Positions 1 to 62,675 of a stretch of 64,000 nucleotides of DNA are shown here, piece after piece. The position numbers and the translations under genes are program-made. The notes beneath the pieces were generated by a model that was not told the DNA's origin, ran no database searches, and saw only the letters and a list, made by a program, of their open reading frames with translations. Source of the stretch: Phaeosaccion multiseriatum (Eukaryota; Protista; Ochrophyta, other classes). Location: NCBI GenBank assembly GCA_965112735.1, contig OZ218951.1, positions 5,890,001 to 5,954,000 on the forward strand, in the 5' to 3' direction. The first letter of the stretch is position 1; each line of letters starts with the position of its first letter.

Positions 1-83
1 GCTGACGAGAGGCAGATCCTTGCGTAGATGGTAGAAGAAGTATATCACGTGAAGTATATGGTGCTCATCTTCCTCTATCTTAC

Positions 84-3000
84 CGAGCAGGTACGGTCGT
101 TACCATCGCAGTCCACCTGTGAGCCTTCGAACTTGGATGGGTTTCCCGGTTCAGACTGTGGCAGGGTTAGCACGCAGGCAGGCAGGAGTGCACCAGCGGA
201 GCAACAAGAGGTGGTCAGCGGGACGTGAAGAAAGGGAGGATGCAGGGCGTGAGTCTCCAAGCACTACTACAAAGTCAGTGAAAGCCGTTCCACCCATCCA
301 CGAAGGCCGAAGAGAGGTCAGAGATGGGGAGTCTTAGAAGAAGTACATGCATCTCCGTCTTCCTTACCTGGCAGGACCCTACACCAATGCAACCAACCAC
401 TGAATCGAGAGACATGATGCCCTGTTCAAATGCAAGCAGCAGGAGTGCAAGTGGAGCAAGAGGTGGCCAGAGGGACGTGAAGAAAGTGACGATGCAGGGC
501 GTGAGTCTCCAAGCACTATAAAGTAAGTGAAAGCCGTTCCACCCATCCACGAAGGCCGAAGAGACGTCAGAGGTGGGGTAGTCTTAGTAGAAGAAGTACA
601 TGCATGTCCGCCTTCCTTACCAGGCAGGATTGTGGACCAGTGCAAGCGCTGACACCGGCTGTCTGTGTGTTGGAGACACTGGCTCTCTGTGCGCACGCAG
701 GCAGGCAGGAGTGCACCAGTGGAGCAACAAGAGGTGACCAGAGGGACGTGAAGAAGGGGAGGATGCAGGGCGTGAGTCTCCAAGCACTACTACAAAGTCA
801 GTCAAAGCCGTTCCACCCACCCACAAAGGCCGAAGAGAGGTCAGAGGTGGGGTAGTCTTAGTAGAAGAAGTACATGCAGCCATGTCCGTCTTCCTTACCT
901 CGCAGGAACCTGGACCAACGCAAAGCAGATCTGAATCGTCAGACGTGATGTCCTGTTCAAATGCACGCAGCAGGAGTACAAGTGGAGCAAGAGGTGGCCA
1001 GAGGGACGAAAAGAAAGGGAGGATGCAGGGCGTGAGTCTCCAAGCACTATAAACACCCGTCGGTGAAAGCCGTTCCACCCATCCACGAAGGCCGAAGAGA
1101 GGTCAGAGGTGGGGTAGTCTTAGTAGAAGAAGTATATGCATGTCCGTCTTCCTTACCTCGCAGGAATCTGGACCACGGCAAACCACATCTGAAGCGGTAG
1201 ACGTGATGTCCTGTTCAAATGCAAGCAGCAGGAGTACAAGTGGAGCAAGAGGTGGCCAGACGCGAAGAAAAGGAGGATGTTGGGCCTGAGTCTCCGAGAG
1301 AAAGCAGCACACTATGTGAGTAAAAGCCGTACGACGCGAACTACTACTATCATGATCTGCCTCTCAAGGCGATCCGCCATGATTCACTCCCCCCCCCTCT
1401 TTTCCTTCCGTACCGAGCAGGAATCTGATGCGGAGCATTCCGCCCTTGATTGCGAGGTCAACTCAACACCCTGTGTGCAAGCAGGCAGGCAGTTGTGCAC
1501 CAGAGGAGCAACAAGAGGAGGCCAGAGGGACGTGAAGAAAAGGAGCATGCAGGGCGTGAGTCTCCGAGAAAACGAACTTTAAACACGAAGTGAAAGCCGA
1601 ACCAGAGATTGGTGTACTGTGGGGAAGAGTGTACTGTGGGGAAGAGTGGTCAGAGGTGAGGTGTGTGTTACGGTGTCTCCGGGGTGTCGCTCCCCTGACG
1701 GGGGCGAACGGCAGCTTGACTCAAGGGGAAGCAGATGCTTATAACTAGGCTGTTGTCCGCCTTTCTTACCGGGCAGGCGTCCGCAGCAGCGCAGAGCGCA
1801 GTTGCATCCGAGTCAAACGTGGAGTCCTGTTCAAAGGCACGCAGTAGGAGCGAAAGCAAGTGGAGCAACAAGTTTTTGGATGTGAACAAAAGGAGCAGGA
1901 GACTCAGGGCGAGAAGCCAAGCAGTAGACTACTGGCAGCCGGTATGAGCGAGAGCGAAAGCACTACCGGGCGATCTAAAGCAGATGTGCCGCTCAGTACG
2001 ACCCATGCAGGACCCCGGCGGCATGCAACAATACACAAGTGGAAGGAGATGCTTCGAGAACTTGCCTTGCAACAATTCACAAGATCGGCGTTGCAATTAG
2101 CCTGGTGGTGTGGGCAGAGAGAGGAGAGGATGAAAAGGAGGGGGCAGCCAGCAAGCGAGGAGGAGGCAGCGAGCAGGTCAGGCACGTCAGAAGGGGTGCC
2201 AGTGTAAAACAGCAACGCAGGCCAAGTCGTGGGGACCGAGGAGACAGAAAACCAGAAAGATTAGCTGCACGTGCCACCACAAGCCATGATAATGATACGC
2301 ATGACGAAGCTGAAAGAGGAAGCACTAGGGAAGGAAAGCAAGGCCAAGTAGTAGCTAACCTCCCCCTTCCTTCGGGAGAAAACACACAAGGGGAAGCAAG
2401 AGGACTGGGGAAGACTCTACAAGGACCATGACATGTCAATGGGGAAACAAGAACAGATAGGAGTAGAGGATGGAGGAGAGAGAGGATGAGGCCAACAAAA
2501 TAGCAGCAGCAGCAGACAGCAAGGATGGAGAGGACGTCATGAACAGACCCGAGAAAGCCGCCCCTCCCTCACTTCCCACGACGTACCTGTGCACATGGAT
2601 TGATGCATGACTTCGCTCGAGGTGGTCAGAGAGCAGCCACAGCCGCCGCCGGGGAGAGAGAGGAGCGGAGAAGAAGGCGGGGCGCGAGCAAGCAAGGAGG
2701 GGCGAGGGGTAGAGGGTGCCGGTGGATAGTAGCAAGCCAACAACAGGCAGGGAGAAGGAGACAGAACGTGAGAAAGGGCTGCGCGCTGCTCGTGCCTCGT
2801 GCGGCAATGGTGTTCATGACGGAGAGGCAAAAGTGAGCAAATAAAGCAAGGCCACGCTAGGCCAGCAAGCCGTGAGCCCCCCCATTTGGTTTTGGAGACA
2901 ATCTCGGTCCCCATCCCAGCCAAGGGCAACCAATAGGAGGGCGCACAGTTAGTGGTGGGCGAGGAAGACAAGAGGTAGAAAAGAAGAGGGGAACTGAGGA

Positions 3001-5577
3001 GTGCGCACAGCAGACGGGAGCGGCCCGAACGAATGACAGAGAGAGTAAGACCAACACCACAGCAGCAGCATCACCAGGAGCAGCAGGCAGGAGGAGGAGG
3101 AAGAAGATAGGATGCCATGAACAAGCTTAAGACATCTGTCCCTCTCCCAGCCAATTGAGGACGTACTCTGAGACACTCTTCCAGCTCCGGTCCAGACTCA
3201 ATCAGGAACGCGCAATCCTTCGCTCGAGGTGGTAGGGACCACGCACGGCCACCGGCGGGCAGAGAGAGGAGAAGAAAGGAGCAAGAAGGAGGGCAAAAAG
3301 CGAGGAGTGCGACGGGGAGGAGGGTCAGTAGATAACAGCAAGCCAAGTGGCTGGCGGGGACGAGGAGACAGCCAGAACATGTGTAAGAAAGCAAGGGCTG
3401 CTGCTCGTGCCAGCACAATGGTATTCACGACGGAGAGGAAAGATTGAGGAAGCAAGCAAGGTCAACGAAGCGAGACGATGTCATCCCGATGCCCATCCCA
3501 AAGGCAAGCACGCAAGAGAGGCGAGGGAGAAACTGCTAGTACATGTGAGATGAATATGAGAAGATGAGAAGAGGAGGAGGAAGGAGGAGTGAGCACAAGA
3601 GACGGAAGCGGCCGAACGATAGGGCAAGCAAGGAGGGTGAGGCCAAGAACACAGCAGCAGCAACAACAGTAATTGGAGAGTACAAGCCCAGGACATCTTT
3701 CCCTCTCCTTGGTTACTAACCGGAAAACAAGTACCCACGCATCCCTTCGCTCGAGGTGGTGAGACAGCACAGCCGCGGGCGGGCAGAGAGGGGAGAGGAG
3801 AAAGACGGGGACGGGCGAGCGAGGCGGAGCGAGGGGGGGGGACGGTGCCAGTCAAGAACAGCAGGCCAAGTGGCTGGCGCGGAGTGCTGCTCGCGCCGCA
3901 ATGGTGTTCATGACGAGCGGAAAGAGTGAGCAAATAAGAAAGCAAGGCAAGCAAGGCCAAGAAGTAGAATCTTCGGGGGAGGGGGAGACAATCTCGTGCC
4001 CAGCCATCCCAAGAACAAGTAGTAAGCAAGAGGATGGAGCGTGAGGACAACAACGCAGCTGCAGAAGCAGTAGCAGTAGCAGCAGCAGCAGCAGCAGCAA
4101 GAATGGGCTGTAGAGGTCATGAACAGGCCCCGAGAAATCTGTCCCTCTCCCCCACTGCCCTGAGCTACGACGTACAGTCACACAGTCCGGGCATGCCTTC
4201 GCTCGAGGTGGTCAGAGAGCAGCCACGGCCGCCGGCGGGGAGAGAGAGGAGCGGAGAAGAAGGCGGGGGGCGAGCAAGCGAGGAGGAGCGAGGGGTGGAG
4301 GGTGCCAGTGGATTGCAGTCAGCAAGCCAAGCGGCAGGGACAAGGACACAGAACGTGAGAAAGGGCTGCTGCTCGTGTGGCAGCCAATGGTGTTTATGGC
4401 GGAGAGGAAAGAGCGAGCCAACAAGCAAGGCAAGCAAGGCCAAGTATGAACAAGCCCATGAAGAGAAGACAAGCATTCACGGTCACGTCACCATCCAAGC
4501 AGGGCATGCAGCAAGAGGAAGGTGAGGCCAACAACAAAGCAGCCAGCAGCAGCAGAAAGAATGGAGAGGACGTCATGAACAGGCCTGAGAAATCTCCCTC
4601 GCCCGCTGCCCTGTGCTACGACCCACCTGATTCCCAGTAGGACACTCCGCGCACATCTTCGCTCGAGGTGGTGGGAGAGCACGGCCGGCGGCACCAGGCA
4701 GAGAAAGGAGCGAGAGGAACAGGAAAAAGGGGGGCGGGGCAAGCGAGGAGGAGCGAGAGGGGGGCGGGCGGGGGGGAGGGCAGTGGGACGGCAAGCCAAG
4801 AGGCGGGGAGGGAGGAGACAGAACATTAGGATGAGCTGGCTGCTGCAAGTGCCACCACTTGCACAAAGCAATGATCATCCATGAGAGAGCGAGGCCCGAG
4901 CTGAAAGCCAACATACCAGGCAGCAGCCCAGCAGCGGCAGCACCAGGCAAGCAAGAAGGGACAGGATTAACAGGCCCGAAGCAAAATCTGTTCCCCGGCA
5001 CTCTCCCTCGCCTCACTTCCGCCCCAGCTGGTGCTACTGTGACGTACCTGTGAACAATCAATATCCGAAGTACACACCTTCGCCGGCGGCCACCAGGCAC
5101 AGAGAAGAGAGGACCAACCAAGGAGGGGGGGGAAGGAGGAGTAAGCCAGCCAGGCAGCAAGGCAGCGGGCGCAAGAAGTAGCAGCCAAGGCCAAGCAAGA
5201 CGCAACAACCAAACGCTGGGGTTGTTTGTGGAGGTCAGACACTCTCGCCCCCAGCCAACAAGGACACGCAAGAGGAGGGGCAATGGTGCGGCTGCGCCCA
5301 GCAGCCCGCTCTCCTTCACTTACTTCTCCAGAAAAGATGGTCCTCTGGGTGAGCACAGGCATGCAGCCAGGCAGGAGCCAAGGAGACGGAAGAGCAGGCA
5401 GGAAGGAGGAGAGAGGGGAATGTCAACAACATCATCAGCCGCAGCAGTATTGCAGCAGAAATGCATTTAGAACCCCCCCCCAAGTGGTGCTTAACGTACC
5501 GGTAAGACAGCAGGGCAATCGGGAGTGGCAGTTGCCGACGTCCAGAAGGAGAGCAGGATGGCTACAGTCAGCTTCAT
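84..5577 (-). CDS. Secreted Cys-rich protein encoded by a micro-exon gene (at least 16 exons; 3' end runs off the window start)
   Basis: Minus-strand exons: 5577-5500 MKLTVAILLSFWTSATATPDCPAVLP (signal peptide); 5344-5324 RTIFSGE; 5077-5048 VCTSDIDCSQ; 4656-4627 MCAECPTGNQ; 4196-4176 ACPDCVT; 3744-3721 GCVGTCFP; 3217-3167 DCAFLIESGPELEECLR; 2610-2587 SCINPCAQ; 2101-2066 ANCNADLVNCCK (GC donor); 1826-1770 DSTFDSDATALCAAADACP; 1470-1414 GVELTSQSRAECSASDSCS; 1210-1157 DITSTASDVVCRGPDSCE; 952-899 DITSDDSDLLCVGPGSCE; 686-621 RASVSNTQTAGVSACTGPQSCL; 421-368 GIMSLDSVVGCIGVGSCQ; 155-84 SEPGNPSKFEGSQVDCDGNDRTCS. Every internal exon is bounded by AG and GT (one GC), has a length divisible by 3 and contains no stop; 243 aa in total. 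Confidence 0.85.
156..2065 (-). repeat. Intron repeat family A of the micro-exon gene (7 related introns, ~200-300 nt)
   Basis: Plus-strand blocks GATGCAGGGCGTGAGTCTCCAAGCACTA (~240, 491, 763, 1022) and AAAGCCGTTCCACCCATCCACGAAGGCCGAAGAGAGGTCAGAG... recur with a ~250-270 bp period. Most copies start GTAAG on the minus strand. Confidence 0.85.
2102..5323 (-). repeat. Intron repeat family B of the micro-exon gene (degenerate, ~250-560 nt)
   Basis: A shared acceptor end ACCACCTCGAGCGAAG| (plus strand CTTCGCTCGAGGTGGT) occurs at 2611, 3218, 3745, 4197 and 4657, with a variant at 5078. Internal blocks are also shared (CATGAACAG.CC, GACAGAACGTGAGAAAGGGCTG, CAATGGTGTTCATGAC). Confidence 0.8.
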
Positions 5578-5649
5578 CTTTGCGTTGCTATTATTGTAGC
5601 TAAGAAAGTGAGGAGAGACCTGCATGATTCTCGCACTCCCGCTGTTGTG

Positions 5650-6202
5650 GACTTTTCGCCAGGGTAGGGTATGCACTTTCAAAAAGTGCCAACACGGCAT
5701 GGGTAGGGGGGTATGCCGCCCACAGGGCGCGAGAAGGTAGCGGCGCGGTATGGAGGTATGCACCTGCACTAGCATGCCCACACCCGCACACCTCTGCACC
5801 GCCCCCTTGCTTTGCCCCTCCATGTGCCCCCCCCCCAAGTCCTCTCTATCTCTCCCCATCTTCCTCGCTCGTGGTCTCTGCCCCTCTCTCCTGGCCGCAC
5901 CCTGCCCCCCTTGCTCCCACCCTCCTCGGTCGACCCCCCTCTGTCTCTCTCCCTCCCATCTCTCGGCTGCTGTGTCTGCGTCTATCCATTGGCCCTCGCT
6001 CCCCGGACCGAGGCATCACCTACCGTGGCCACTGTCGGTGGTATCGCGGCAGCGGGAACATCTTTGTGAGGGGAACCGGGATTTGAGCACGCGGGTATGG
6101 AGGTATGCTGTACCAAGGGCCCCCGATTGGGACACAGGGGCAGGGGGGTATGCCATTTTGACCCCCTTGCTGAAAGTGCATACCCTACCCTGGCGAAAAG
6201 TC
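5650..6202. mobile_element. MITE-like non-autonomous element with a perfect 32-bp inverted repeat
   Basis: GACTTTTCGCCAGGGTAGGGTATGCACTTTCA (5650-5681) is the exact reverse complement of 6171-6202. Internal direct repeats GGTATGGAGGTATGC and GGGGGGTATGCC are present. There is no coding capacity and no TSD was identified. Confidence 0.6.
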
Positions 6203-7351: not shown

Positions 7352-8545
7352 ATGAGGCTTATTCTTCCTTTTTTGCTGCAACAGCTCTCTCCTTCCAGTG
7401 ACGTATACTCACCCCCTTCTTTTGCTTCTCTCCAGTCCGTGAGCCTCTGTAAGGCTATTGTCTTTAAGAAGGGCATCGAGGAAATTCGAACCGCGGCAAG
7501 AGCACTCATCGCCAGGAAAGGAGGGAACAGGACATGCCTCGACGAAGTCATGGGCGTGGAGGAGAGGAAGAGTATTATCCTGATGTGTGGGGGGGAATTT
7601 CCCATAGAGGATTATTTAAGTTGGACCCCGATGGGAATGGTGCTCGTTATGAAAAGCGGACCAGACGTCGTCGGCATGCTTCTCGAAGAAGGGGCTTCTC
7701 CGGACACGCTTGTAGGGCCGGAAGCCATGAGCCCTCTGTGCATGGCAAGCGGCGATTGCACGCCAGCCATCGTCCAGCACCTGTTAGCCGCGGGTGGGGC
7801 GGTGAATGTCGCCTGCGGTAATCTACAGCGAACGCCTCTCCACATTGCTTGTATGAAGAACCACCTTCCCATCACACGGCAACTTCTCGCTGCTGGCGCT
7901 GACGTCGAGAGCCGGTGCAGAGATGACTGGACTCCCCTTCATATGGCTGTATTCGGTGGCCATCTTTCGATCATGAAAGCTCTTCTTGAGGCTGGTGCAA
8001 GCGTTCATGTGCGTGGATCAGCAGAATCCGGAAACGCCTCTCTCCTCCACATTGCTTCCCGAGAAGGGCATCCTCATTTATTTGAGGCACTGCTCTCTGC
8101 CGGGGCCGAGTTGAACAGGTTGACTCATGCGGGAAGCGCCCCTCTTCATGTGGCAGTGCAGTTTGGTCAGGCAACGATGGTGCATAAGCTTCTTGCTGCG
8201 GGGGCGGAGGTGGACAGTGGAGCCCAGTTCACCCCTCTCTTCGCAGCAGCGTATTACAGCCGGGAGTGGGCCATGCAGGAGCTGTTTAGGGCAGGGGCGT
8301 CCCTTCCCAAGGCCCTCAAGGCGGCTCGGCAGCGGGGCCACCCTGAATGTGCGGTTCGCCTCTTGGCCGCGAATAAGCGCTACTCCGACTCTCAGCGTGT
8401 GGTGGACGTGATGCGTGTGTGCGATGGCGTCTGCTGGGAGAAGGAGGGGCGCAGTCAGCAGAAGGGAGGGCCGTTGCAGAGGGGACTTCGGCCGGAAGCC
8501 CTGGAGCTGATCGCCGCTGCGGCGATCGCCGATGAGGTGCCTTGA
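7352..8545 (+). CDS. Ankyrin-repeat protein
   Basis: About 6 ankyrin repeats (SPLCMA, TPLHIAC..NH, TPLHMAVFGGH, SLLHIASREGH, APLHVAVQFGQ, TPLFAAA, each followed by an LL.AGA-type motif). The true start may be a short upstream exon (ATG 7307, donor 7318). Confidence 0.9.
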   Translation: MRLILPFLLQQLSPSSDVYSPPSFASLQSVSLCKAIVFKKGIEEIRTAARALIARKGGNRTCLDEVMGVEERKSIILMCGGEFPIEDYLSWTPMGMVLVMKSGPDVVGMLLEEGASPDTLVGPEAMSPLCMASGDCTPAIVQHLLAAGGAVNVACGNLQRTPLHIACMKNHLPITRQLLAAGADVESRCRDDWTPLHMAVFGGHLSIMKALLEAGASVHVRGSAESGNASLLHIASREGHPHLFEALLSAGAELNRLTHAGSAPLHVAVQFGQATMVHKLLAAGAEVDSGAQFTPLFAAAYYSREWAMQELFRAGASLPKALKAARQRGHPECAVRLLAANKRYSDSQRVVDVMRVCDGVCWEKEGRSQQKGGPLQRGLRPEALELIAAAAIADEVP

Positions 8546-13167: not shown

Positions 13168-13986
13168 AGGAGAAAGGGTGGTTTCCGAGTCGAGGGCATG
13201 TATGTATCGGACTGCGCATATACCCTAGACACATGTCTGGGGGCCCAATCACTCTCTTTGCGGCCTTGTTATACACAAAGAGACAAGGCAATGACAGAGC
13301 AAGAGGGGCCTAAGAGGGGGTCTGTGTCCTTTGTGTCCTTTGAGACCTTTGAGACCTGGCCTGCTTGCACGCCACTGCGCACCACTCTTACAGTGGTGTG
13401 ACAGAGCCGTTACATCTTTTGAAGCACAGGCTGAGAGGCTGGGGCGGCTGCACGCAGAATCCCCCCTTCCCCCTTTCCTGGGGATGGACATTTGAGGCCG
13501 TAGTCTGGGATGGACATTTGAGGCCGTAGTCTGGAGCTTGCGCAGTGGAGCTTGTGCAGTGGAGCTTTTACTCTCGCGGCAACAAAACTTCAATTGATAA
13601 AAAGCAAAGCAAAACAAAACAAAAAAGAACAAAACAAAACAAAACAAAACACTGTATTCTGCCGGACTTTACCGGCCTTGCGGGCCGCTTTCTATGCCTA
13701 CCATTTATAGGGATAAATACAGTGCGCTTAAAAAAGAAAGGGAGAAATACAGTGTTCTTCAGGGAGTGTGTGTGTGCTCATTTTTTTAACTACTACAACA
13801 TGGACTTGGTGAGGACGGGTGGGCCAAACACAGCGGCTCTTCCCCTCTGTGCAGGGCCCATTCATGCACAATTCCCCTTTTCCTTTTCCATCGTGTAAGC
13901 AGTTGGTGATACACGGACCTGCGCCTCACAAGGGGGGCTCCCTCACACCTCTCGCCCCTCCAATCTCCCCCCGCTCAGCTCTCTTC

Positions 13987-35900: not shown

Positions 35901-38900
35901 TTCCCCTCCTGTAGTGCTGCCCCGGGTCTGTCGGTCAAACGCAGCACGTCCTTGACGCGCATGGTGGTGGTACGGTCGGCGTCGTCCCCGTCCTCGCCAG
36001 CGCTGCGAACAAGGGCCACGTACTCGCCCCCCGTGAGGAGCATCCCGAGCTGCTTCAGACAAACCCTCGTGAGCGCGTCCCTGTCCAATGTGTGTGTGTG
36101 TGTGGCCCTCCGCTCGCCACCCCGGCTCGCCGAGACTAGTACGGCCTTCAGCGCCTTCACCGCCGCCTTTCCGTCTTTACCCCTACCGTCTTGTCCGTCC
36201 GCCCCCTCTTCTTCTCCTCCTGCTGCTGGCCGTTGCAGTAGCTTCAAACTCAAATTCAGCTGTCGACCGGCCTTGTCGCAGGAGTGCTCGGCGTCCATAC
36301 CCGTACACACCCACGCTGCAAACATGGAATAGTTCACTCGCGCCGCTCCCCCTCCTCCTTCCGCTCCGAAGGCCTCCATGAGCACTTTCGCGTCCTTGCT
36401 GTTGAGCTTCATTCCGAGGCTTTCGCACGTCTTGCGGAAGGCCTTCTCGGGCAGGAAGGATGTGCGCTTGCTGAGGCCTGTGGCTTCCGCCTCGGCCTCG
36501 TGCATGGCCTCCGACACGAGCGCGTGGTGGGTGGTGCTGGTGCTGGTGCTGGTGCTGGTGCTGCCCATGTGACTGCCGCTGCTCTGCTTCATCTTCTTGG
36601 AGCGGGCAGAGGCGGCCTTGAGCAGCTGCGCCGACATCTGTGAGCGGGGGGGGGGGGAGGGGAGTGCGCCCATGCGTGCATATGTGAAAACGCCACAGAG
36701 AGAGATGGATAGAGGAAGAAGAACTTAGGGAGGGAGACAGGAGGAAAGGGATGTTCCGGGTCTGACGTGAATGTGTTCTCGCAAGGACGCATCCCCCCAC
36801 TCTGCCATCACGTGTGACTGACCCACCTGCCCCCAGAGCTTGTCCATCCCCTCGAGCTTGGCCGAGTGTGCCGCCACCAGCAGGCTGTGCAAGTCGCCCC
36901 AGCCAAAGCCGCCACCTGCTGTCAGGACCTTCTTTCTCTTCTTCTTCTTGTCGTGGTCCCTGTTGGGCTGCTCTCCGACCCAACCAGAGGTGGGAGGCGA
37001 AGCCGAGGCCCTGAGTCTCCACAGTAACGCCGCGTCTTGTGCCGTAAAGACGTTCCTCCTCCGCCCACCCTCGGCAGCGGCCCCGCCCTTCTGCAGCACC
37101 TTGAGGAGGTGGCTGCGGGTTTCCAGTTCGCCATCCTCGTCCGCCTCTGAGGCGAAGGCCTTGCTGAGCCTCCCCTTTTGCACCTCCACTGCGGCGAGCC
37201 GGGCCAGCTTCTTGCGGAGCGCGGAGGACGCTAACTGTTGTTGCTCCTGTAGCACCAGTCGCTTCTTCCGCTTGCCGTCTCCGGAGTCGCTACTGCCGCT
37301 GCCGTCACTACTGAAGTTGTCCTCGGTGGAATCCTCGTCCTCGTCTCCGCTGCTGCTACTGTCGCTACTGCCCCCTCTGCGGCGGCTTCCTTCTCGTCTC
37401 CGGCGGGAGGGCGACGAGGAGGGGGACTTGTTCTTACCGCGCGAGAAAGGGCTCCGCAGCCTGTCCAAAGCGCTCTTCTTCCTTCCTTTGCCCCCCCCCC
37501 CCCCCGCCCTATGGCGCCGAGAACTATCGCCGTGTGGGTCGTCGTCTTCGTCGCTGCGGGATGCATCACTGTCCCCGCCCGAGGAGGAAGAGGAGGAGGA
37601 GGGGACCCTCTTCCCCTTGTCCCTGCCCCTACCTCTGTCTCTGCTGCTGCCCGTCTGGACCAAGCGAAGCAGCTTGTCTACGCTCACCATGCCTCGCCCG
37701 TCCCCAACACTCCTCGACACCGCCCGCAGCTGCGACGTCGAAGGGGCGGGGAGACGAAACTTGACGCACACTTTGCTCAGATTGGGATCGCTCAGCACAG
37801 CCCTCTGTGACCCCCTGCCCTCTGCGTATCCCTCGAGGTACCTTCGGAGATCCGAGGGGGACTTTCTGTAACGCTCGAGAGCCCCCGCCAGGGCCTCTGC
37901 CAGCCGAAGCGCCACTTTCTTGTCCGTCTTGTCCTCTTCTGTCTCGCCCTCCTCCTCCCTTCCCCCTCTTATGTTTCTCGTGCTGCCCGTCCTGCGCGGA
38001 CTGCGACTGCCCCCACCGCGACCACTGCGACCACCGCCTCTGCCGTCGTCGGACAAGGATGCTTCCGAGGAGTGGCGTTCATGAGCGCCAGGGTCGGGCC
38101 TGCGCTGCTGACTCGAGCCGGAGGGGGAGAGTCTGCGAGGAGTATGCGTCGCCTCGGAGTCCCTCGGGCGCACCCACCGGGGCTCCACCCTCACCTCCAC
38201 GGCCCCGCTACCGCTGCACTTGACGTCGTACGAGCCATCGCGATGCACCACGCTCACGCGCCCACTCACCCACTCCTGGGCCCCTCTACTCCTCCCGCTG
38301 CGTCCTGACACCTGCACCTGCACCTTGTCTCCCACCTGGAAGTGCTCCTGCGGTAGCTCCACCTCCGACTCCCCTCCGCTCGCCTGCCCCTGTCGCCCCC
38401 GTCCACTGCCGTCCGCCTGGCTCCTGCTCGCCTTCCTCACCCACCTCTTGTCCATCCTCTCCTCCCTCTCGCCTGTCGCATCATAAGTAAGGTCTAGGGT
38501 CCCATCTCTGTGGATGCCCGACACCTTACCAGGTGTCCACCTTCCCCGGCCCCTTCGGTTGCCTTCCACACGATCGCCCAGCCGTAAAGGAACTTCCTCC
38601 TCCACTTCAGACACGACCGAATCATTTCGTGGGTGTCCTCGAGTCGGTTTCCCCCCCCCCCTACCATCCCCAGCCTTCTTCCTCACCATGTCCCTCTCCA
38701 TCGCTCGGTCCTCGTCACCATCGTCATAGCGTACGTGAAGCGTGCCGTCTCTGTTCTTTCGCATGACTGTACCCTTGTACCAGCGGCCCTTACCCTTGTA
38801 GTTGGCCTCCACAGGGTCACCTACGTCCAGCTCCGCCTCTGCCTCTGAGTCATCAGCGTATCGACTGCGCTGAGGAGACTTCGGCCGAGCAGCCGCTCCT

Positions 38901-41900
38901 CCCCTCTTCCTCACCATGTTCCTCTCCATCGCGCGGTCCTCGTCACCATCATCATAGCGTACATGAAGCGTGCCGTCTCTGTTCTTTCGCATGACTGTAC
39001 CCTTGTACCAGCGGCCCTTACCCTTGTAGTTGGCCTCCACAGGGTCACCTACGTCCAGCTCCGCCTCTGCCTCTGAGTCGTCCGCGTGACGAGACTTCGG
39101 CCGAGCAGCCGCTCCTCCCCTCTTCCTCACCATGTTCCTCTCCATCGCTCGGTCCTCGTCACCATCATCATAGCGTACGTGAAGCGTGCCGTCTCTGTTC
39201 TTTCGCATGACTGTACCCTTGTACCAGCGGCCCTTACCCTTGTAGTTGGCCTCCACAGGGTCACCTACGTCCAGCTCCGCCTCTGCCTCTGAGTCGTCCG
39301 CGTGACGAGACTTCGGCCGAGCAGCCGCTCCTCCCCTCTTCCTCACCATGTTCCTCTCCATCGCGCGGTCCTCGTCACCATCATCATAGCGTACATGAAG
39401 CGTGCCGTCTCTGTTCTTTCGCATGATTGTACCCTTGTACCAGCGGCCCTTGCCCTTGTAGTTGGCCTCCACAGGGTCACCTACGTCCAGCTCCGCCTCT
39501 GCCTCTGAGTCATCAACGTATCGACTGCGCTGAGGAGACTTCGGCCGAGCAGCCGCTCCTCCCCTCTTCCTCACCATGTCCCTCTCCATCGCGCGGTCCT
39601 CGTCACCATCATCGTAGCGTACGTGAAGCGTGCCGTCTCTGTTCTTTCGCATGACTGTACCCTTGTACCAGCGGCCCTTGCCCTTGTAGTTGGCCTCCAC
39701 AGGGTCACCTACGTCCAGCTCCGCCTCTGCCTCTGAGTCGTCCGCGTGACGAGACTTCGGCCGAGCAGCCGCTCCTCCCCTCTTCCTCACCATGCTCCTC
39801 TCCATCGCTCGGTCCTCGTCACCATCATCATAGCGTACGTGAAGCGTGCCGTCTCTGTTCTTTCGCATGACTGTACCCTTGTACCAGCGGCCCTTACCCT
39901 TGTAGTTGGCCTCCACAGGGTCACCTATGTCCAGCTCCGCCTCTGCCTCTGAGTCGTCCGCGTGACGAGACTTCGACCGAGCAGCCGCTCCTCCCCTCTT
40001 CCTCACCATGTTCCTCTCCATCGCTCGGTCCTCGTCACCATCATCATAGCGTACGTGAAGCGTGCCGTCTCTGTTCTTTCGCATGACTGTACCCTTGTAC
40101 CAGCGGCCCTTGCCCTTGTAGTTGGCCTCCACAGGGTCACCTACGTCCAGCTCCGCCTCTGCCTCTGAGTCGTCCGCGTGACGAGACTTCGGCCGAGCAG
40201 CCGCTCCTCCCCTCTTCCTCACCATGTTCCTCTCCATCGCGCGGTCCTCGTCACCATCATCGTAGCGTACGTGAAGCGTGCCGTCTCTGTTCTTTCGCAT
40301 GACTGTACCCTTGTACCAGCGGCCCTTGCCCTTGTAGTTGGCCTCCACAGGGTCACCTACGTCCAGCTCCGCCTCTGCCTCTGAGTCGTCCGCGTGACGA
40401 GACTTCGGCCGAGCAGCCGCTCCTCCCCTCTTCCTCACCATGCTCCTCTCCATCGCTCGGTCCTCGTCACCATCATCATAGCGTACATGAAGCGTGCCGT
40501 CTCTGTTCTTTCGCATGACTGTACCCTTGTACCAGCGGCCCTTGCCCTTGTAGTTGGCCTCCACAGGGTCACCTACGTCCAGCTCCGCCTCTGCCTCTGA
40601 GTCGTCCGCGTGACGAGACTTCGGCCGAGCAGCCGCTCCTCCCCTCTTCCTCACCATGTTCCTCTCCATCGCTCGGTCCTCGTCACCATCATCATAGCGT
40701 ACATAAAGCGTGCCGTCTCTGTTCTTTCGCATGATTGTACCCTTGTACCAGCGGCCCTTGCCCTTGTAGTTGGCCTCCACAGGGTCACCTACGTCCAGCT
40801 CCGCCTCTGCCTCTGAGTCATCAGCGTATCGACTGCGCTGAGGAGACTTCGGCCGAGCAGCCGCTCCTCCCCTCTTCCTCACCATGTCCCTCTCCATCGC
40901 TCGGTCCTCGTCACCATCATCATAGCGTACGTGAAGCGTGCCGTCTCTGTTCTTTCGCATGACTGTACCCTTGTACCAGCGGCCCTTACCCTTGTAGTTG
41001 GCCTCCACAGGGTCACCTACGTCCAGCTCCGCCTCTGCCTCTGAGTCGTCCGCGTGACGAGACTTCGGCCGAGCAGCCGCTCCTCCCCTCTTCCTCACCA
41101 TGTTCCTCTCCATCGCTCGGTCCTCGTCACCATCATCATAGCGTACATGAAGCGTGCCGTCTCTGTTCTTTCGCATGACTGTACCCTTGTACCAGCGGCC
41201 CTTGCCCTTGTAGTTGGCCTCCACAGGGTCACCTACGTCCAGCTCCGCCTCTGCCTCTGAGTCGTCCGCGTGACGAGACTTCGGCCGAGCAGCCGCTCCT
41301 CCCCTCTTCCTCACCATGTTCCTCTCCATCGCTCGGTCCTCGTCACCATCATCATAGCGTACATGAAGCGTGCCGTCTCTGTTCTTTCGCATGACTGTAC
41401 CCTTGTACCAGCGGCCCTTACCCTTGTAGTTGGCCTCCACAGGGTCACCTACGTCCAGCTCCGCCTCTGCCTCTGAGTCATCAGCGTATCGACTGCGCTG
41501 AGGAGACTTCGGCCGAGCAGCCGCTCCTCCCCTCTTCCTTACCATGTTCCTCTCCATCGCGCGGTCCTCGTCACCATCATCGTAGCGTACATGAAGCGTG
41601 CCGTCTCTGTTCTTTCGCATGACTGTACCCTTGTACCAGCGGCCCTTGCCCTTGTAGTTGGCCTCCACAGGGTCACCTACGTCCAGCTCCGCCTCTGCCT
41701 CTGAGTCGTCCGCGTGACGAGACTTCGGCCGAGCAGCCGCTCCTCCCCTCTTCCTCACCATGTTCCTCTCCATCGCTCGGTCCTCGTCACCATCATCATA
41801 GCATACATGAAGCGTGCCGTCTCTGTTCTTTCGCATGACTGTACCCTTGTACCAGCGGCCCTTACCCTTGTAGTTGGCCTCCACAGGGTCACCTGCGTCC

Positions 41901-44701
41901 AGCTCCGCCTCTGCCTCTGAGTCATCAGCGTATCGACTGCGCTGAGGAGACTTCGGCCGAGCAGCCGCTCCTCCCCTCTTCCTCACCATGTCCCTCTCCA
42001 TCGCGCGGTCCTCGTCACCATCATCGTAGCGTACATGAAGCGTGCCGTCTCTGTTCTTTCGCATGACTGTACCCTTGTACCAGCGGCCCTTGCCCTTGTA
42101 GTTGGCCTCCACAGGGTCACCTACGTCCAGCTCCGCCTCTGCCTCTGAGTCATCAGCGTATCGACTGCGCTGAGGAGACTTCGGCCGAGCAGCCGCTCCT
42201 CCCCTCTTCCTCACCATGTCCCTCTCCATCGCTCGGTCCTCGTCACCATCGTCATAGCGTACGTGAAGCGTGCCGTCTCTGTTCTTTCGCATGACTGTAC
42301 CCTTATACCAGCGGCCCTTGCCCTTGTAGTTGGCCTCCACAGGGTCACCTACGTCCAGCTCCGCCTCTGCCTCTGAGTCATCAGCGTATCGACTGCGCTG
42401 AGGAGACTTCGGCCGAGCAGCCGCTCCTCCCCTCTTCCTCACCATGTCCCTCTCCATCGCGCGGTCCTCGTCACCATCATCATAGCGTACATGAAGCGTG
42501 CCGTCTCTGTTCTTTCGCATGACTGTACCCTTGTACCAGCGGCCCTTGCCCTTGTAGTTGGCCTCCACAGGGTCACCTACGTCCAGCTCCGCCTCTGCCT
42601 CTGAGTCGTCTCGTGTCCTTACTGATGAAGGCCGAACAGGGCCTCTGCCCACGCTCCTCATGCACGCGGGTCGGACGCTCTCCTCGCGTTCGCCGTCGTC
42701 ATACGCAATGTCGTAGGTGCCATTTCGGTTGGCCCTGGCGACTTTGCCGGAGTACCACTTGCTGTGACCCCTGTACCTAGCCTCCACCTTCTGCCCCACA
42801 CGGAAGGTGTCTCCGCCGCCACCCAAGTCGGATGAGGCCGCGGATTGCAGAGAGTCACAACTGGCGGCACCGGCCGAGCCCTCCATGCCTAAAGGGGGGT
42901 ATGAGGAGGATGAGGGGATTAGGAGGCGAAGATGGAGCATTGGGGACGGGTGTTGTTGCTAGGCTTCGGCGACGACAAAGGTGCAGAATGGTGTATGGTG
43001 GCGGAGGGCATGCAAGGGCGAGGATGGGCAGGCGAAGAACACCAAATGGACAGTAGCATAGCATGGTACCAAATGGACAGTAGCATAGCATGGTACCAAA
43101 TGGACAGTAGCATAGCATGGTACCAAATGGACAGTAGCATAGCATGGTACCAAATGGACAGTAGCATAGCATGGTACCAAATGGGCAGTAGCATGGTGGA
43201 CAGTAGCATGGTGGCTTCGCCAATGCGCATACATACCACACCCATACCGCCCAGGCCATCTTCAGGACAGAGGCATGTCCTGACACCCCTTACCCACCTG
43301 AGATGACCCTTCTCCCCGGCGACTTGGGCTTCTCGGGGCCCAACAAGCTCCCTGAGCTGGACGTGCCATTGAGAGCCCTCATGAGGCCCGCTGACACGCC
43401 CCTCTCGGCCTCTCCGTCGTCGTAGATAATGTCATACGTCCCGTCTCGGTTCTTATCGGAAACCTTTCCCTTGTACCAACGGGATCGGCCCCGATACTGC
43501 GCCTCGATGGCGTCTCCCACCCGGAAGTGCCCAAGGCGCACTATGTCGGCGTCTGAATCGTCTGTTGTCGCCGCTGACCGCCCGTCCCCGCCCGCGGCCC
43601 GAATGTTGCTGGGCTTAACTCCCCTCTCCTCTTCTCCGTCGTCATATCGAATGGTATAGTCTCCGAATCTGTCTGGGCGGTCAGCTATCCTGCCCGGGAG
43701 CCACCTGCCCCGGCCTTTGTACTTGGCCTCGACCTTCTGCCCCACTCGAAAGCTCTCACTCGCCCCTCCCCCACCCCTGGGCTCGCTGCTAACATGCATC
43801 CGAGTGGAGAGAAGCAGCAGCCAAGGCAAGTCCAGTCAGGTCAAGTCAACAGCATATCGGCAGGAGGAGGCCAGCAGAGAGGCGGGTTGGGGTAGGGGAG
43901 GGGAAGGGGGTAGGGGCGGGCGGAGACACATGAGGGACCGAGCGGAGGGGAAGCGGCTGGACTAACGCTTGGTGTCAGGATGGATGGACTCACGCTTTGC
44001 TGCCGGGGCTGTCGCGATCCCTGAACGAGCTCTTGGGGGGTGCGGCTCTGTAGCTGCCCGAGTCATCAGCCGCCGCCCTGCCGCTCGACCCCCTTCGGAG
44101 CCCGCCCGTGGGGCTGGTGCTGAGCCCTCTCCCGCGAGGGCTGTCCTCAAGGGTCCTGGAGCCGGGGCGAGGGCGCGAAGGAGAGGGGGCTTTGGCGTCG
44201 ATGCTTCCCGCCCTTTGGCGGTTGGCGGCAAGAACAGGCGAAAGGGGGGGGGGGGGGGAGAGGGAGGAGAGAGGGACATGGTCAGGGTGCCAGGTCCTAT
44301 CTACGGGCAGTCTCAACACCAAAGCCGAAAGGCAGATAGCTCACAGGGGGGGACGGGGAATGGCGCCATCTTAGACTGCTCCTGTTGGAGATGGAGATGG
44401 GGGGAAGGAAGGATAGGCGGGGGAGAATGCCCCATGGCCTACCAAGCCTGCCCGCCCCGTTCCCACCCGTCTCTCCCCTCCCCTGATAGAATCCTAGCCC
44501 GCTGCCTTGTACACGCAAAAAAAAGGCATTTCCCGCCTGACTGGCGTACCTCGGGGGACGTCCTCTCGCGGAGCTTGGCCCTGCCGCCTTGGCCTCGGCT
44601 CCGGCGCTGGAGGCGGCCGCGCGGAAGCGAGACATGGGTCTGGGTCTGCCCCCAGACCGACTGCTGGGGCCCATATCGAACTCCAATACATCACCCCCCA
44701 T
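26401..44701 (-). CDS. NPHP1: Giant nephrocystin-1-like protein: 23 Tudor/Agenet-like repeats, multiple EF-hands and the NPHP1 C-terminal domain (~20 exons)
   Basis: The C-terminal exons match the NPHP1 domain as recalled: GMP.NYR.SVL...LLQP...L.LADL; [11 protein letters not shown]; FLGN...WTF; LLELT; [11 protein letters not shown]; LHGGTPF; LP..I; YR; [16 protein letters not shown]; [10 protein letters not shown]-hands include [47 protein letters not shown]|VEWVEF and DSDDSGTL. Same-strand exons form an unbroken chain; the single-transcript model is inferred. Confidence 0.72.
28902..29487. repeat. Intronic 21-bp minisatellite (~22 copies) followed by (CAGT)n
   Basis: Unit TGGTGTCAGACAGGCAGTCAT spans 28902-~29370; (CAGT)n spans ~29395-29487. 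Confidence 0.95.
30058..30197. repeat. Intronic 36-bp tandem repeat (~4 copies)
   Basis: Unit GGATGATGGATCAACAATAAAAGCATCTGTCTGCAG. Confidence 0.9.
33906..34153. repeat. Intronic ~53-bp tandem repeat (~4.5 copies) built from GTCAAGC subunits
   Basis: GTCAAGCGGATGTCAAGCATTAGAAGTCAAGCCTTCAAGGTTAAGCATTAGAG-like units start near 33906, 33959, 34012 and 34065. Confidence 0.85.
38680..42610 (-). repeat. Coding tandem array of 18 near-identical Tudor-like units (216 or 228 bp)
   Basis: The marker ACAGGGTCACCT occurs at 38811, 39039, 39255 ... 42339, 42567. The unit is [46 protein letters not shown] with short (SRHADD) or long ([10 protein letters not shown]) linkers. Confidence 0.97.
43042..43210. 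repeat. Intronic 27-bp tandem repeat (5 full copies plus a degenerate tail)
   Basis: Unit CCAAATGGACAGTAGCATAGCATGGTA. Confidence 0.95.
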
Positions 44702-59800: not shown

Positions 59801-62675
59801 CAGTGGCGCATGGGAACGGTAACAGATGGCAACAGAACGAAAACATGTGAGCTACACGTGGCTCCATGGGGTGGGCCGAGGCAGCAGCTTTTAACCTTTA
59901 CTATATACACTATAGTGTGCCATGCGAGCCTCTATCCTCCTGCCCTCTCTGCCACGAGGCAGGTATCCTCTTCAGCTCCTTCCAACGTCCATGTACCAAT
60001 ACGTACCTTGTGCTGTCGCCGCTGTCGCCGCTGACATTGCTGATCTGCGGGCGGATGAAGGCGAAGTAATGCCCTCCGTGCAGCTCCCCGCTGTGCACCA
60101 GCACGCTATGCAGGCGGTAGCGCTGAGGTGCAGCCGTTGGTGCTACACCAGGAGCAGCAGCAGCGGCAGCGGCGGCAGCGGCAGCCCCTGCCAGAGAGGG
60201 CTCCTGGTGTGTGGCAAGGTACTCGTCAATGTCGAGCGTCTCCGGGAATTCGAACTTGTCGTTGACCTTGACCATGTTCCCTGTGGCCATGTCGAACTCG
60301 AAGCGCTTGAGATGGATGTTCAGCACCGGAGGGAACTCCAGGAACTTGACACCTGTATATGTATCAGCGGGCAAGTGCGGCAGCGAATTCACAAGATGCA
60401 GTGGTGAGAACGACTACACGCCGCCAGTCGCTGGCCCGCGGATTCGCATCACGCCCCTTGCACCCCCTTCTTTCTTTCTTTCTTTCCTTCCTTCCTTCCT
60501 TCCGTCCTTCCTTCGCCTTCGCCTTCAATCGAACAATCCACCAACGGGGGCGTGTGGTTCTTCCCAGACAAGAAAGAAAAATAGAGAGAGAAGAAGACTC
60601 AAGATAAACAGACAAGAGACATCCCCTCAAACTCCAACTCCAACTGGCACTCCATGTTCATCTGCATCCGACCCACCCTTCTTGGCTGCCTGCTTGCCGA
60701 AGTGCCCCGCATCGTACTCATTGTCCCCGTCCATGAGCTCCTCCTCAGTGTACTTGGCGAAGCTCTGGTGGATGTTCCTGCAGCCCTTGACGTCGAGCTG
60801 AATGTCATAGTACGTCTCCTCCCTCTTGCTCTCGTAGTCCACGTCCACGCACCTGATGGACATGTAGAGAAGGTTAGCGCAGAGGGGTCAGGAGCGCTGA
60901 GGAGAGAGAAGAGGAGAGAGAGGAGGAGGAGGAGCACAGAGGTCCCTTCCACTCCACTCCACTTGCCTGATGTAGGAGCGCAGGCGCCCCCCGAAGAGGC
61001 GCTCGATGGCCCCGTCGGCCTTGGTGCCCTTCATTTTCTCCTCGAGCTTGTCGCACAGCACGCGGTTGAGCTCCTGTACGTCCTGCTGCAGGAAGCTGTC
61101 GTACGTGTCCCAGCCGAAACTCTTGGTCAGCTCCTTGGTGCCCACGGGCCGGGGCGGCCCAATGTGGCTGGCCTTAGCAACGCCATTGCCCTTGGACTCA
61201 ATGGACTCAATGGACTCATTGGACTCATTGGATTCGCTCGTGGGCTGCCCCGTCTGCAGCCTCCAAAACACCTTCTGCAAGGCAAGCGGCACGCTCGTGG
61301 CGGCGTCCTCCCCCGCCGTGGGAATGTCGTACACGGCCTTGCGGAGGCTGTGCAGGTGGAAGAGCGTCTGCAGCAGGGAGTTCATGTAGCAGGTGGCGCC
61401 CTGGTTCTTCAGGCCCACCATGCCCGTCTCTCTGTTCCGATCCAAAGTAGAGAGTCCCCCCCTGCCCCCTACCGCGCTCCCGGCTGGGGAGATGTCCGTC
61501 ACGCGCACCGCCAGGCGGAACGTACCCCCGGGCCAAAGCAGTGCCGGGTTGCCCTTGAGCTCCTTCCTCTCCCAGCACCTGGGGTAGCCGTAGTCGGAGT
61601 TGGTCGCTGTGAAGTCGTGCGCGAGCATGTCCTTCTCCTTGGACTGCGCGATGTCGAATCTGTCCAGGAGGGCGAGGTCGAACTCCACCCGGCGGTGCCA
61701 GCGCTCTCCGCCCCTGCACCCCGCCTGCAGCGCCTTGGCGTTGACCAGCTCGAGAAAGGCGGATACGTTGCCCGTCGTGTTGTAGTCGTTCCCGAAGGGA
61801 AAGACCATGAGCCTCCACACGCAGCCCTCCTTGTCCCTCACAGCGCGGCTGTACAGCTTTTTGCGGCCGGGCTCGTGCGGCGTGGCGTAGTTTTTGGGGT
61901 GGAAGGGAAAGTCCGCCACGAACACGAGGCGGCCGTCCCCAACCTCCGTCAGTCTCTCAAGACTGCCGCTCTCCTCATTGTCATTGTTCTCGTCGTTCTC
62001 GTCCTCCTCCACAATGGCCCTCTCCAGGCCCGCAAACTCCCGGCCCTGCACACCGCCGTCATCTGAAATCTGGTGGAGAGCCGGCGGTCCATACACCCGC
62101 TGCTGCCCATATGGCTGCTGCTGCCGAGGCGGAAGCTTCTTGAGGCGCTTGTTTGCAACGGGCGATATCGTTCGGCCCCCCTCCTCTGGCCCTGTGGCAT
62201 CGTGCTCTCCTGGAGCGGTCGCGCCATTGAGCCCAAGCTCCATGCCACCAATCGGCGCCGTGACGATACGTGACGAAGGGAAAGGTCTGAAGACCTCCTC
62301 CTCCCCCTCCTCCGCTTCCTCGTCCTCCTGCTGGGCAGGGGCCATCCTCGCCCCTACCCCTCCTCTGGCCTCCATGGGCGGTATGGCGCGAGCCACGCGG
62401 GAGACATTGCTGGGCGACAGATTGGGAGGAATGGGTCTGGTAGGAGGCCCACCATTCTCAATGTCTTCACCCGAGTCATACCTTTCAGGCGAGGCATCCC
62501 CGCCACCCCCTTGCGCCAGGTGCGGGTGGTGCGAGAAGGCCGGTTCCTGCCTCCCGTCGCTGTCTGGGGAAGCAGGAACTGGAGCCTCCTTCGCTACTGC
62601 CTCTGCGGCTGGTGAAGCAGGAGCTGGAGCATCAACCACAGGTTCTTGTTGCTCCTGATTCTCAGTGTTATCCAT
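53476..62675 (-). CDS. USP7: Ubiquitin-specific protease 7 (USP7/UBP12/13/Ubp15 family)
   Basis: MATH domain (WRLMVFPFGN...VSAFL...HDF....DYGY), Cys box GLKNQGATCYMNSLLQ, QQDVQELNRVL, YYDIQLDVKG, LHLKRF-type motif (IHLKRFEFD), His box LVHSGELHGGHY, WFKFDD, SAYMLVYVRE, and UBL-region R.W....R.NKTVRP. Confidence 0.93.

Follow-up and report, generated by a model that had tools for sequence, protein, structure and literature searches.

Symmetric cysteine micro-exons between look-alike introns in Phaeosaccion multiseriatum: a probable unannotated gene for a secreted repeat protein

What is the apparent satellite at positions 84 to 5577 of a 64,000-nt stretch of Phaeosaccion multiseriatum DNA (assembly GCA_965112735.1, contig OZ218951.1, positions 5,890,001 to 5,954,000; this whole stretch is hereafter the window), and why do its conserved spacers resemble one another more than the short segments that they separate? 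An earlier note, made from the letters of the window, had proposed that the array is a multi-exon gene on the minus strand. This appears to be the best reading that the sequence allows, given exon lengths that are multiples of three, cysteines held in register with the splice sites, a predicted signal peptide and splice signals that match those of a control gene. It is very likely that the locus is a real gene. The fuller statement, that it is the 5' part of an unannotated nuclear gene for a secreted, strongly acidic, cysteine-repeat protein that grew by tandem duplication of exon plus intron, is probable. Transcription, splicing and secretion, the disulphide loops of the product and selection as the cause of exon divergence are what we infer from the DNA.

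When the exons are joined by script on the minus strand, from 5577-5500 to 155-84, the 16 exons (729 nt) give 243 codons without a stop, and the exon model of the earlier note is thereby reproduced base for base; the two alternative frames of the joined exons contain 8 stops each. The 15 internal exons measure 21, 30, 30, 21, 24, 51, 24, 36, 57, 57, 54, 54, 66, 54 and 72 nt, that is, nine distinct lengths, and all 15 are divisible by three and in phase 0, as had been claimed, whereas the introns (155-556 nt) have lengths divisible by three in only 2 cases of 15. The exon borders could not be chosen freely for frame, because they sit on intron motifs conserved between cassettes; with at least 10 independent length constraints, the chance that all exons would be multiples of three is approximately 3^-10, or about 2e-5. 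Base composition also switches at the borders, from 19% A and 28% G in the exons to 13% A, 23% G and 64% C+T in the introns. The model comprises a signal-peptide exon, a short linker exon and two families of exon-plus-intron cassettes, B and A, that meet at a transition exon (a slash marks the exon border here and below):

5500 to 5577, minus strand: exon 1, 78 nt, with the start codon, the signal peptide MKLTVAILLSFWTSATA, small residues at -3/-1 and the first cysteine; donor CCG/GTACGT
5324 to 5344, minus strand: exon 2, 21 nt, a unique linker with 0 cysteines; acceptor CACCCAG/, donor GAA/GTAAGT
5048 to 5077, minus strand: exon 3, 30 nt, family B, C-x5-C
4627 to 4656, minus strand: exon 4, 30 nt, family B, C-x2-C; donor GTGGGT
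4176 to 4196, minus strand: exon 5, 21 nt, family B, C-x2-C
3721 to 3744, minus strand: exon 6, 24 nt, family B, C-x3-C; donor GTTAGT
3167 to 3217, minus strand: exon 7, 51 nt, family B, C-x12-C
2587 to 2610, minus strand: exon 8, 24 nt, family B, C-x3-C
2066 to 2101, minus strand: exon 9, 36 nt, transition exon with 3 cysteines; GC donor AAG/GCAAGT
1770 to 1826, minus strand: exon 10, 57 nt, family A, C-x5-C at its 3' end
1414 to 1470, minus strand: exon 11, 57 nt, family A, CACAG acceptor subtype
1157 to 1210, minus strand: exon 12, 54 nt, family A, TTTGAACAG acceptor subtype
899 to 952, minus strand: exon 13, 54 nt, family A
621 to 686, minus strand: exon 14, 66 nt, family A, CACAG subtype
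368 to 421, minus strand: exon 15, 54 nt, family A; duplication partner of exon 13
84 to 155, minus strand: exon 16, 72 nt, family A, C-x6-C; positional duplication partner of exon 14
1 to 83, minus strand: start of intron 16, with a GTAAGA donor and a 5' end like that of family A introns
156 to 2065, minus strand: family A introns 9-15, 199-299 nt
2611 to 5047, minus strand: family B introns 3-7, 391-556 nt, CT-rich, with the conserved 3' end CCACCTCGAGCGAAG/

Beyond exon 16 come a further donor, GTAAGA, and 83 nt resembling the start of a family A intron that runs out of the window; the gene therefore extends past the left edge, and exons 1-16 are not the whole of it. At the other end, an alternative in-frame ATG lies at 5625, 48 nt upstream of the modelled start, and its use would lengthen the n-region of the signal peptide. 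Long mechanical open reading frames (ORFs) also run inside the introns (3481-4053 and 4573-5319), but these are by-products, since CT-rich introns are poor in stops and the intron copies differ by insertions and deletions whose lengths are not multiples of three.

The cysteines follow the splice sites. As the earlier note had observed, cysteine occupies the second codon of exons 3-8 and the last but one of exons 9-16, with no exceptions. The joined exons contain 30 cysteine codons; when the exon sequence was shuffled 2000 times, the number was 9.5 +/- 3.0, with a maximum of 25. Exactly two cysteines are carried by 13 of the 15 internal exons, exon 2 having none and exon 9 three. In family B (six cassettes, exons of 21-51 nt), each exon opens with x-Cys and the second cysteine stands 2-12 residues further on; in family A (seven cassettes, exons of 54-72 nt), each exon closes with C-x5/6-C-x. 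Presumably, each two-cysteine exon would form one small disulphide loop. The residues encoded by exon 1 begin with MK, a charged start, and go on to a hydrophobic core of ten residues and to S-A-T-A ahead of the likely cleavage site, which is the n/h/c layout with an A-x-A motif; the signal peptide proposed in the earlier note is thus a prediction from sequence. The mature part within the window (226 residues) has an isoelectric point of 4.05, with 34 D+E against 8 K+R. Cysteine makes up approximately 13% of it (12.3% of the 243-residue product), Ser, Thr, Ala and Gly are abundant, and the mature part within the window contains no His, Tyr, Trp or N-glycosylation sequon. Judging by these features, the product would most likely act outside the cell, as a surface, matrix or adhesive protein that would display variable loops outward. 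Diatom frustulins have acidic, cysteine-rich domains as well.

The splice signals can be compared with those of a second gene in the window. In the model, seven donors begin with GTAAG and six with GTACG, and the others are GTGGGT, GTTAGT and one GC donor (GCAAGT, after exon 9). The acceptor before exons 4-8 is CCACCTCGAGCGAAG/, and a related one, CGGCGAAG/, precedes exon 3; exons 10, 12, 13 and 15 are preceded by TTTGAACAG/, and exons 11 and 14 by GC(A/G)CACAG/. The control is a USP7-like gene on the minus strand at 56.4-62.8 kb, in which three junctions at 59.9-61.0 kb are anchored by homology. The first reads TACATCAG/GCAAGT ... TCCATCAG/GTGCGT and encloses a CT-rich GC-AG intron of approximately 115 nt, the second reads AAGAAGG/GTGGGT ... 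ATATACAG/GTGTCA, and the third has the donor ACAAG/GTACGT. Because these control junctions show them, a GC donor, GTGGGT, GTACGT, CT-rich introns and CAG acceptors can be regarded as normal usage here. The GC-AG intron of the USP7-like gene sits within the 60852-60966 / 61155-61250 region, and the catalytic domain of this gene carries an in-frame low-complexity insertion (SNESNESIESIES..., approximately 32 residues) relative to human USP7.

The second half of the opening question concerns the exons and introns as copies. A 258-nt period was found over 205-1295 by Tandem Repeats Finder, and a direct-repeat search returned 13 families (D1-D13). Introns 12-15 are 84-94% identical in pairs, against 44-72% for exons 13-16. 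In the alignment of cassettes, near-identity of the introns reaches the acceptor, exon similarity then collapses save for two TGC codons and GG, and it resumes at CCTGC..G/GTAAGG. The first 100 nt of introns 12-15 are common to all four, and the last 50 nt fall into two classes that track the exon subtype; the last-duplicated unit was therefore a pair of cassettes, namely [intron 12, exon 13, intron 13, exon 14] against [intron 14, exon 15, intron 15, exon 16]. All 11 of the 11 parsimony-informative sites in introns 12-15 support this grouping (i12,i14 / i13,i15), with 0 in conflict, and the depths of the two intron pairs are similar (5.5% and 7.8%). Set beside the introns of the same units, the exons have diverged far more:

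Introns 12/14 and 13/15: 27 differences in 403 (6.7%)
Exons 13 and 15: 15 differences in 54 (27.8%); Fisher p against the introns 1.6e-5
Exons 14 and 16: 32 differences in 57, with 24 further gap columns (56%); Fisher p against the introns 5e-18
Introns 4 and 7, family B, last 127 nt: 11 differences in 127 (8.7%; 91% identical)
Exons 5 and 8, family B: 11 differences in 21 (52%); Fisher p against the introns 9e-6

Exons are thus four to eight times more diverged than their flanking introns, and the inverted conservation described by the earlier note, with introns alike and exons diverging, is borne out (p 1.6e-5 and 5e-18). Exons 14 and 16 are unalignable except at the cysteine codons and are effectively unrelated. 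Between exons 12 and 13 there are 8 nonsynonymous and 0 synonymous changes, and between exons 13 and 15 there are 12.5 nonsynonymous and 2.5 synonymous changes.

It is reasonable to propose a history in which a signal-peptide exon and a short linker exon came to be followed by two arrays of exon-plus-intron cassettes, and in which these arrays expanded through tandem duplication of an exon together with its intron. Because every exon is symmetric and in phase 0, duplication or loss would have kept the frame. The latest event would have been the two-cassette duplication, after which the introns drifted by about 7%; one exon pair (13/15) would have changed four times as fast, mostly at nonsynonymous positions, and the other (14/16) would have been replaced outright save for its cysteine codons. 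Change would thus have focused on exon bodies, and cysteine spacing, frame and splice signals would have been kept. The cause may be diversifying selection on loop residues, exon-sized replacement from other cassettes, or both.

The same contrast between exons and introns could arise in another way: the cassettes may be old, with introns homogenised by gene conversion or unequal crossing-over, in tracts that halt at the diverged exons, and with exons drifting under a weak constraint for which only the cysteines and a few Gly, Ser and Pro residues matter. In that case the product would be a plain structural matrix, mucin-like or adhesive protein, its variability would have no special function and positive selection would have no part. 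Concerted evolution is usual in tandem arrays, and the acidic composition, rich in Ser, Thr and Asp, fits a structural extracellular protein. Moreover, the first 100 nt of introns 12-15 are near-identical, with private differences alone, and the synonymous difference between exons 13 and 15 (proportion of synonymous sites that differ, 0.19) exceeds the divergence of the introns. Intron 11 is a visible hybrid, its 5' half being unique and its 3' half resembling the family; recombination within introns therefore does occur and has breakpoints inside them. However, all informative sites of introns 12-15 lie on one tree (11:0:0), without a mosaic or conversion signal among these four introns, and homogenisation would require separate conversion tracts that each end exactly at exon borders; nor is simple drift easy to reconcile with the changes between exons 12 and 13, all of which are nonsynonymous. 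We consider homogenised introns unlikely, and recent duplication followed by accelerated exon change is favoured, because the intron tree is free of conflict and both intron pairs are of similar depth, as duplication of a whole unit predicts.

Is the locus a gene at all? Several points weigh against the gene and the history proposed for it. In family B the acceptor (GCGAAG/) is unusual: a GAG precedes it by 5 nt, its pyrimidine tract is 35-60 nt distant, and none of the three control junctions matches its type; it is the weakest point of the gene model. Codon usage is weakly gene-like (frame 0 is the best at -0.07 bits per codon, vs -0.37 and -0.40), and G+C at third codon positions is 0.55 in the model vs 0.70 in reference coding sequence. 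The window does not reach the 3' end of the gene, and the open frame is established for 243 codons only. Searches of sequencing runs with the gene, and with a 9.7-kb exon-dense stretch that contains the USP7-like gene, returned DNA-like runs alone, all of one sample, with 0 splice joints. No homologue backs the reading frame in searches with a profile built on four repeat units, which misses the other three and beyond whose reach distant kin may lie. Finally, synonymous counts are too small to establish positive selection. The DNA-only runs, the missing homologue, the weak codon bias and the odd acceptor could each be expected if the array were a CT-rich satellite or the remnant of a dead gene that happens to be readable in one frame, and CT-rich DNA is indeed stop-poor, with long ORFs even within the introns. 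Nonetheless, the exons themselves are not CT-rich and their other two frames are interrupted, exon lengths but not intron lengths are all multiples of three, in 13 cassettes two cysteine codons keep a constant spacing from the splice sites, the 5' end is predicted to encode a textbook signal peptide, and donor and acceptor motifs are kept in every cassette. A readable accident is thus very improbable, and a real gene remains the reading that we prefer.

A more ambitious possibility, raised in the earlier note, is that the gene works as a diversification system, in which cassettes are skipped, repeated or swapped so as to produce variable secreted proteins, rich in disulphides, that would act in recognition, adhesion or defence. 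The means would be alternative splicing, or somatic or germline recombination in the look-alike introns. Each internal exon is symmetric and in phase 0, and 13 of the 15 carry an even number of cysteines (two each), so that most skips would leave an in-frame, foldable product; hypervariable exon bodies, moreover, lie between conserved introns. The claim that any exon can be skipped holds for frame but fails for cysteine pairing at exon 9, since this exon has 3 cysteines and exon 1 has 1, and its loss would leave an odd number. Precedents exist: in brown-alga ROCO genes, which encode one repeat per exon, multiple splice variants with differing sets of exons are reported (PMC11378527), and schistosome micro-exon genes (MEGs) exploit symmetric micro-exons by skipping (PMC4350168). 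On the other hand, exon symmetry follows automatically from tandem exon duplication and is not in itself evidence of regulated skipping. Collagen, for example, has symmetric exons without regulated skipping. The runs matched are of DNA, so that not even one isoform is in view, and the introns have neither docking/selector complementarity nor an Rfam element. The four deep DNA runs, all of a single sample, show neither variant letters nor any variant in cassette number. MEG-like diversification is consequently rather improbable, and we regard it as similarly doubtful that the look-alike introns serve as handles for recombination, splicing or both in building individual- or cell-specific surface repertoires (self/non-self, gamete or substrate adhesion, defence).

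The DNA runs bear on the assembly as well. Contigs from the four runs were compared with the window over 1-6000. The runs contain 94-98% of the sampled words, intron and intergenic words included, and their contigs, at 70-590x, are colinear with the window, with 0 variant letters and 0 insertions or deletions; the assembly can therefore be considered sound. Two odd joins were seen. In two runs, a contig joins 4300 to 4753 and so bypasses one 452-nt family B cassette, the shorter side of the join having 21 letters only, and in all four runs a contig joins 3106 back to 2469 via 19 other letters. Both joins probably stem from paralogous cassettes elsewhere, or from graph paths that run through words common to the introns, although they may represent a variant in cassette number.

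Searches for control elements and for further cassettes were made within the window. At 1-6200, no Rfam covariance match was obtained on either strand with E up to 1, and the inverted-repeat search found no arm common to the cassette introns and no docking/selector complementarity; with no unique site to which the cassette introns are jointly complementary, there is no support for a Dscam-like selector mechanism. No paralogous or decayed cassettes lie elsewhere in the 64-kb window, and no inactivated or reverse-strand exons lie inside the introns there. Two introns contain repeats of other kinds. In intron 5, a family B intron, a (GCA)15 microsatellite occupies 4055-4099, where the contigs of all runs break, and similar GCA runs account for every match between the introns and the rest of the window. 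In intron 10, word depth rises approximately 13-fold over 1601-1800 (7634 vs about 590 in one run), with loose contig ends at 1673 and 1707, and a perfect tandem of 17 nt x 2.2 (GTGTACTGTGGGGAAGA) stands at 1612-1648 beside the depth jump; this intron houses a short, highly repeated dispersed element.

To look for relatives of the product, a 19-position profile of the family A repeat was aligned from exon translations, four units being used. Among 1.84 billion representatives, six matches reached E < 0.001, all of them RCC1-repeat proteins; these are spurious, arising from a compositional 'TTDSSAY..C' stretch with a different cysteine spacing. The same profile gave no match in the PDB. As a calibration, the 243-residue product of the gene itself would score 109.8 bits (E 6e-28) at that database size, and the product is accordingly absent from the library. 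In the literature, no description of a cysteine micro-exon cassette gene was found for brown algae or their relatives.

Judged by analogy, the architecture of the locus is of a known kind, represented by brown-alga ROCO-LRR (leucine-rich repeat) genes, schistosome MEGs and collagen, and the repeat itself is new. The comparison drawn in the earlier note with MEGs and with the one-repeat-per-exon genes of Ectocarpus is apt as an architectural analogy, but the locus belongs to neither group. In Ectocarpus, ROCO-LRR and NB-ARC-TPR (tetratricopeptide repeat) genes encode one repeat per frame-preserving exon, undergo exon shuffling, are under positive selection and yield alternative splice forms (Zambounis et al. 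2012, PMC3341825; Teng et al. 2024, PMC11378527). The locus shares with them tandem exon-plus-intron units, one repeat per short frame-preserving exon (here in 13 cassettes), diverging exon bodies and resistance to annotation. However, the brown-alga genes encode intracellular GTPase or NB-ARC receptors, whereas the product of the locus opens with a predicted signal peptide. ROCO-LRR exons are a uniform 72 nt with one LRR each and are counted as phase 2 in Teng et al. 2024 (PMC11378527), compared with nine lengths of 21-72 nt at the locus. The LxxLxLxxN pattern of LRRs and the TPR pattern are both absent from the locus repeat, and the part of the gene within the window has no ROC-COR domain; domains encoded further downstream would lie beyond the window.

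In schistosome MEGs, very small symmetric exons make up most of the coding sequence, a signal peptide is present and variants arise by exon skipping; such genes have been reported as exclusive to platyhelminths (PMC4350168). A bioRxiv study (10.1101/2023.06.21.545858) likewise defines MEGs by small symmetric exons. Both MEGs and the locus have tiny symmetric exons (3-81 bp in MEGs, 21-72 nt here), a signal peptide (predicted here) and fast-evolving coding sequence. Nonetheless, MEG introns reach 5 kb, in contrast to 155-556 nt here, MEG exons are not tandem duplicates with look-alike introns, whereas the cassette origin of the locus is obvious, and MEG products are mostly not cysteine-repeat proteins. 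The 19-position profile detected no homology to MEGs. Furthermore, skipping in MEGs has been shown by complementary DNA, whereas splicing of the locus is predicted.

Other systems share single aspects. Fibrillar collagen genes, with their 54-bp exons, and the PEVK exons of titin are long arrays of short symmetric exons that arose by tandem exon duplication, with a whole number of structural repeats in each exon, and in titin PEVK this symmetry is exploited for exon skipping; however, collagen and PEVK exons are conserved in sequence, their introns are not more alike than the exons, and the repeats are Gly-X-Y and PEVK. The inverted pattern of conservation is familiar from snake venom phospholipase A2 genes and conotoxins, in which introns and the signal sequence are more conserved than the mature exon with its cysteine framework, and loops vary on a scaffold of retained cysteines. 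These toxins, however, form families of separate small genes rather than cassette arrays within a gene, and nothing at the locus indicates homology to them or toxicity. In Dscam-type arrays, mentioned in PMC11378527, tandem duplicated exons are mutually exclusive. Like the locus, such arrays combine tandem duplicated exons with conserved intronic elements, but their exons substitute for one another, whereas those of the locus would be read in series.

If the gene is transcribed as predicted, it would be among the cleanest non-animal genes in which nearly all coding sequence lies in symmetric micro-exons, down to 21 nt. It would also represent a sharp case of exon-focused acceleration, the introns being 93% identical and the exons between them 44-72%. 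The building of variable proteins from exon cassettes, known in brown algae only for intracellular LRR/TPR receptors, would thereby extend to secreted cysteine-loop proteins. In addition, the locus would offer a concrete test case for annotation, as such loci may well escape ab initio gene callers or disappear under repeat masking.

Several features lie near the gene or further along the window. Immediately upstream, an inverted repeat of 35 nt, whose arms (5652-5686 and 6166-6200) are 94% complementary, bounds a 549-bp element at 5652-6200 that resembles a miniature inverted-repeat transposable element (MITE) or an element with terminal inverted repeats (TIR) and ends 75 nt upstream of the ATG of the gene. 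Each of the DNA runs shows three contigs branching at 5650 and a rise in depth across 5601-5800; this MITE/TIR-like element is therefore present in multiple copies in the genome. On the opposite strand, 1.8 kb from the micro-exon gene, an ATG-started ORF of 397 codons (7352-8545, plus strand) encodes ankyrin repeats (Ank_2, E 1e-33). Its exact product is absent from the public gene-position collection, which suggests that the collections searched contain no annotation of the genome. The 11-mer GTTGGTGATAC is absent from the micro-exon gene and occurs seven times in the window (4 on the plus and 3 on the minus strand), at 13902, 14171, 14261, 14412, 16009, 19197 and 50272, three of these copies falling within 250 nt at 14.2-14.4 kb. 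Further on, an uninterrupted ORF of 2071 codons on the minus strand (36725-42940) is full of Tudor/Agenet-like barrels (Pfam Agenet, E 8e-105; Tudor_5; SGF29_Tudor).

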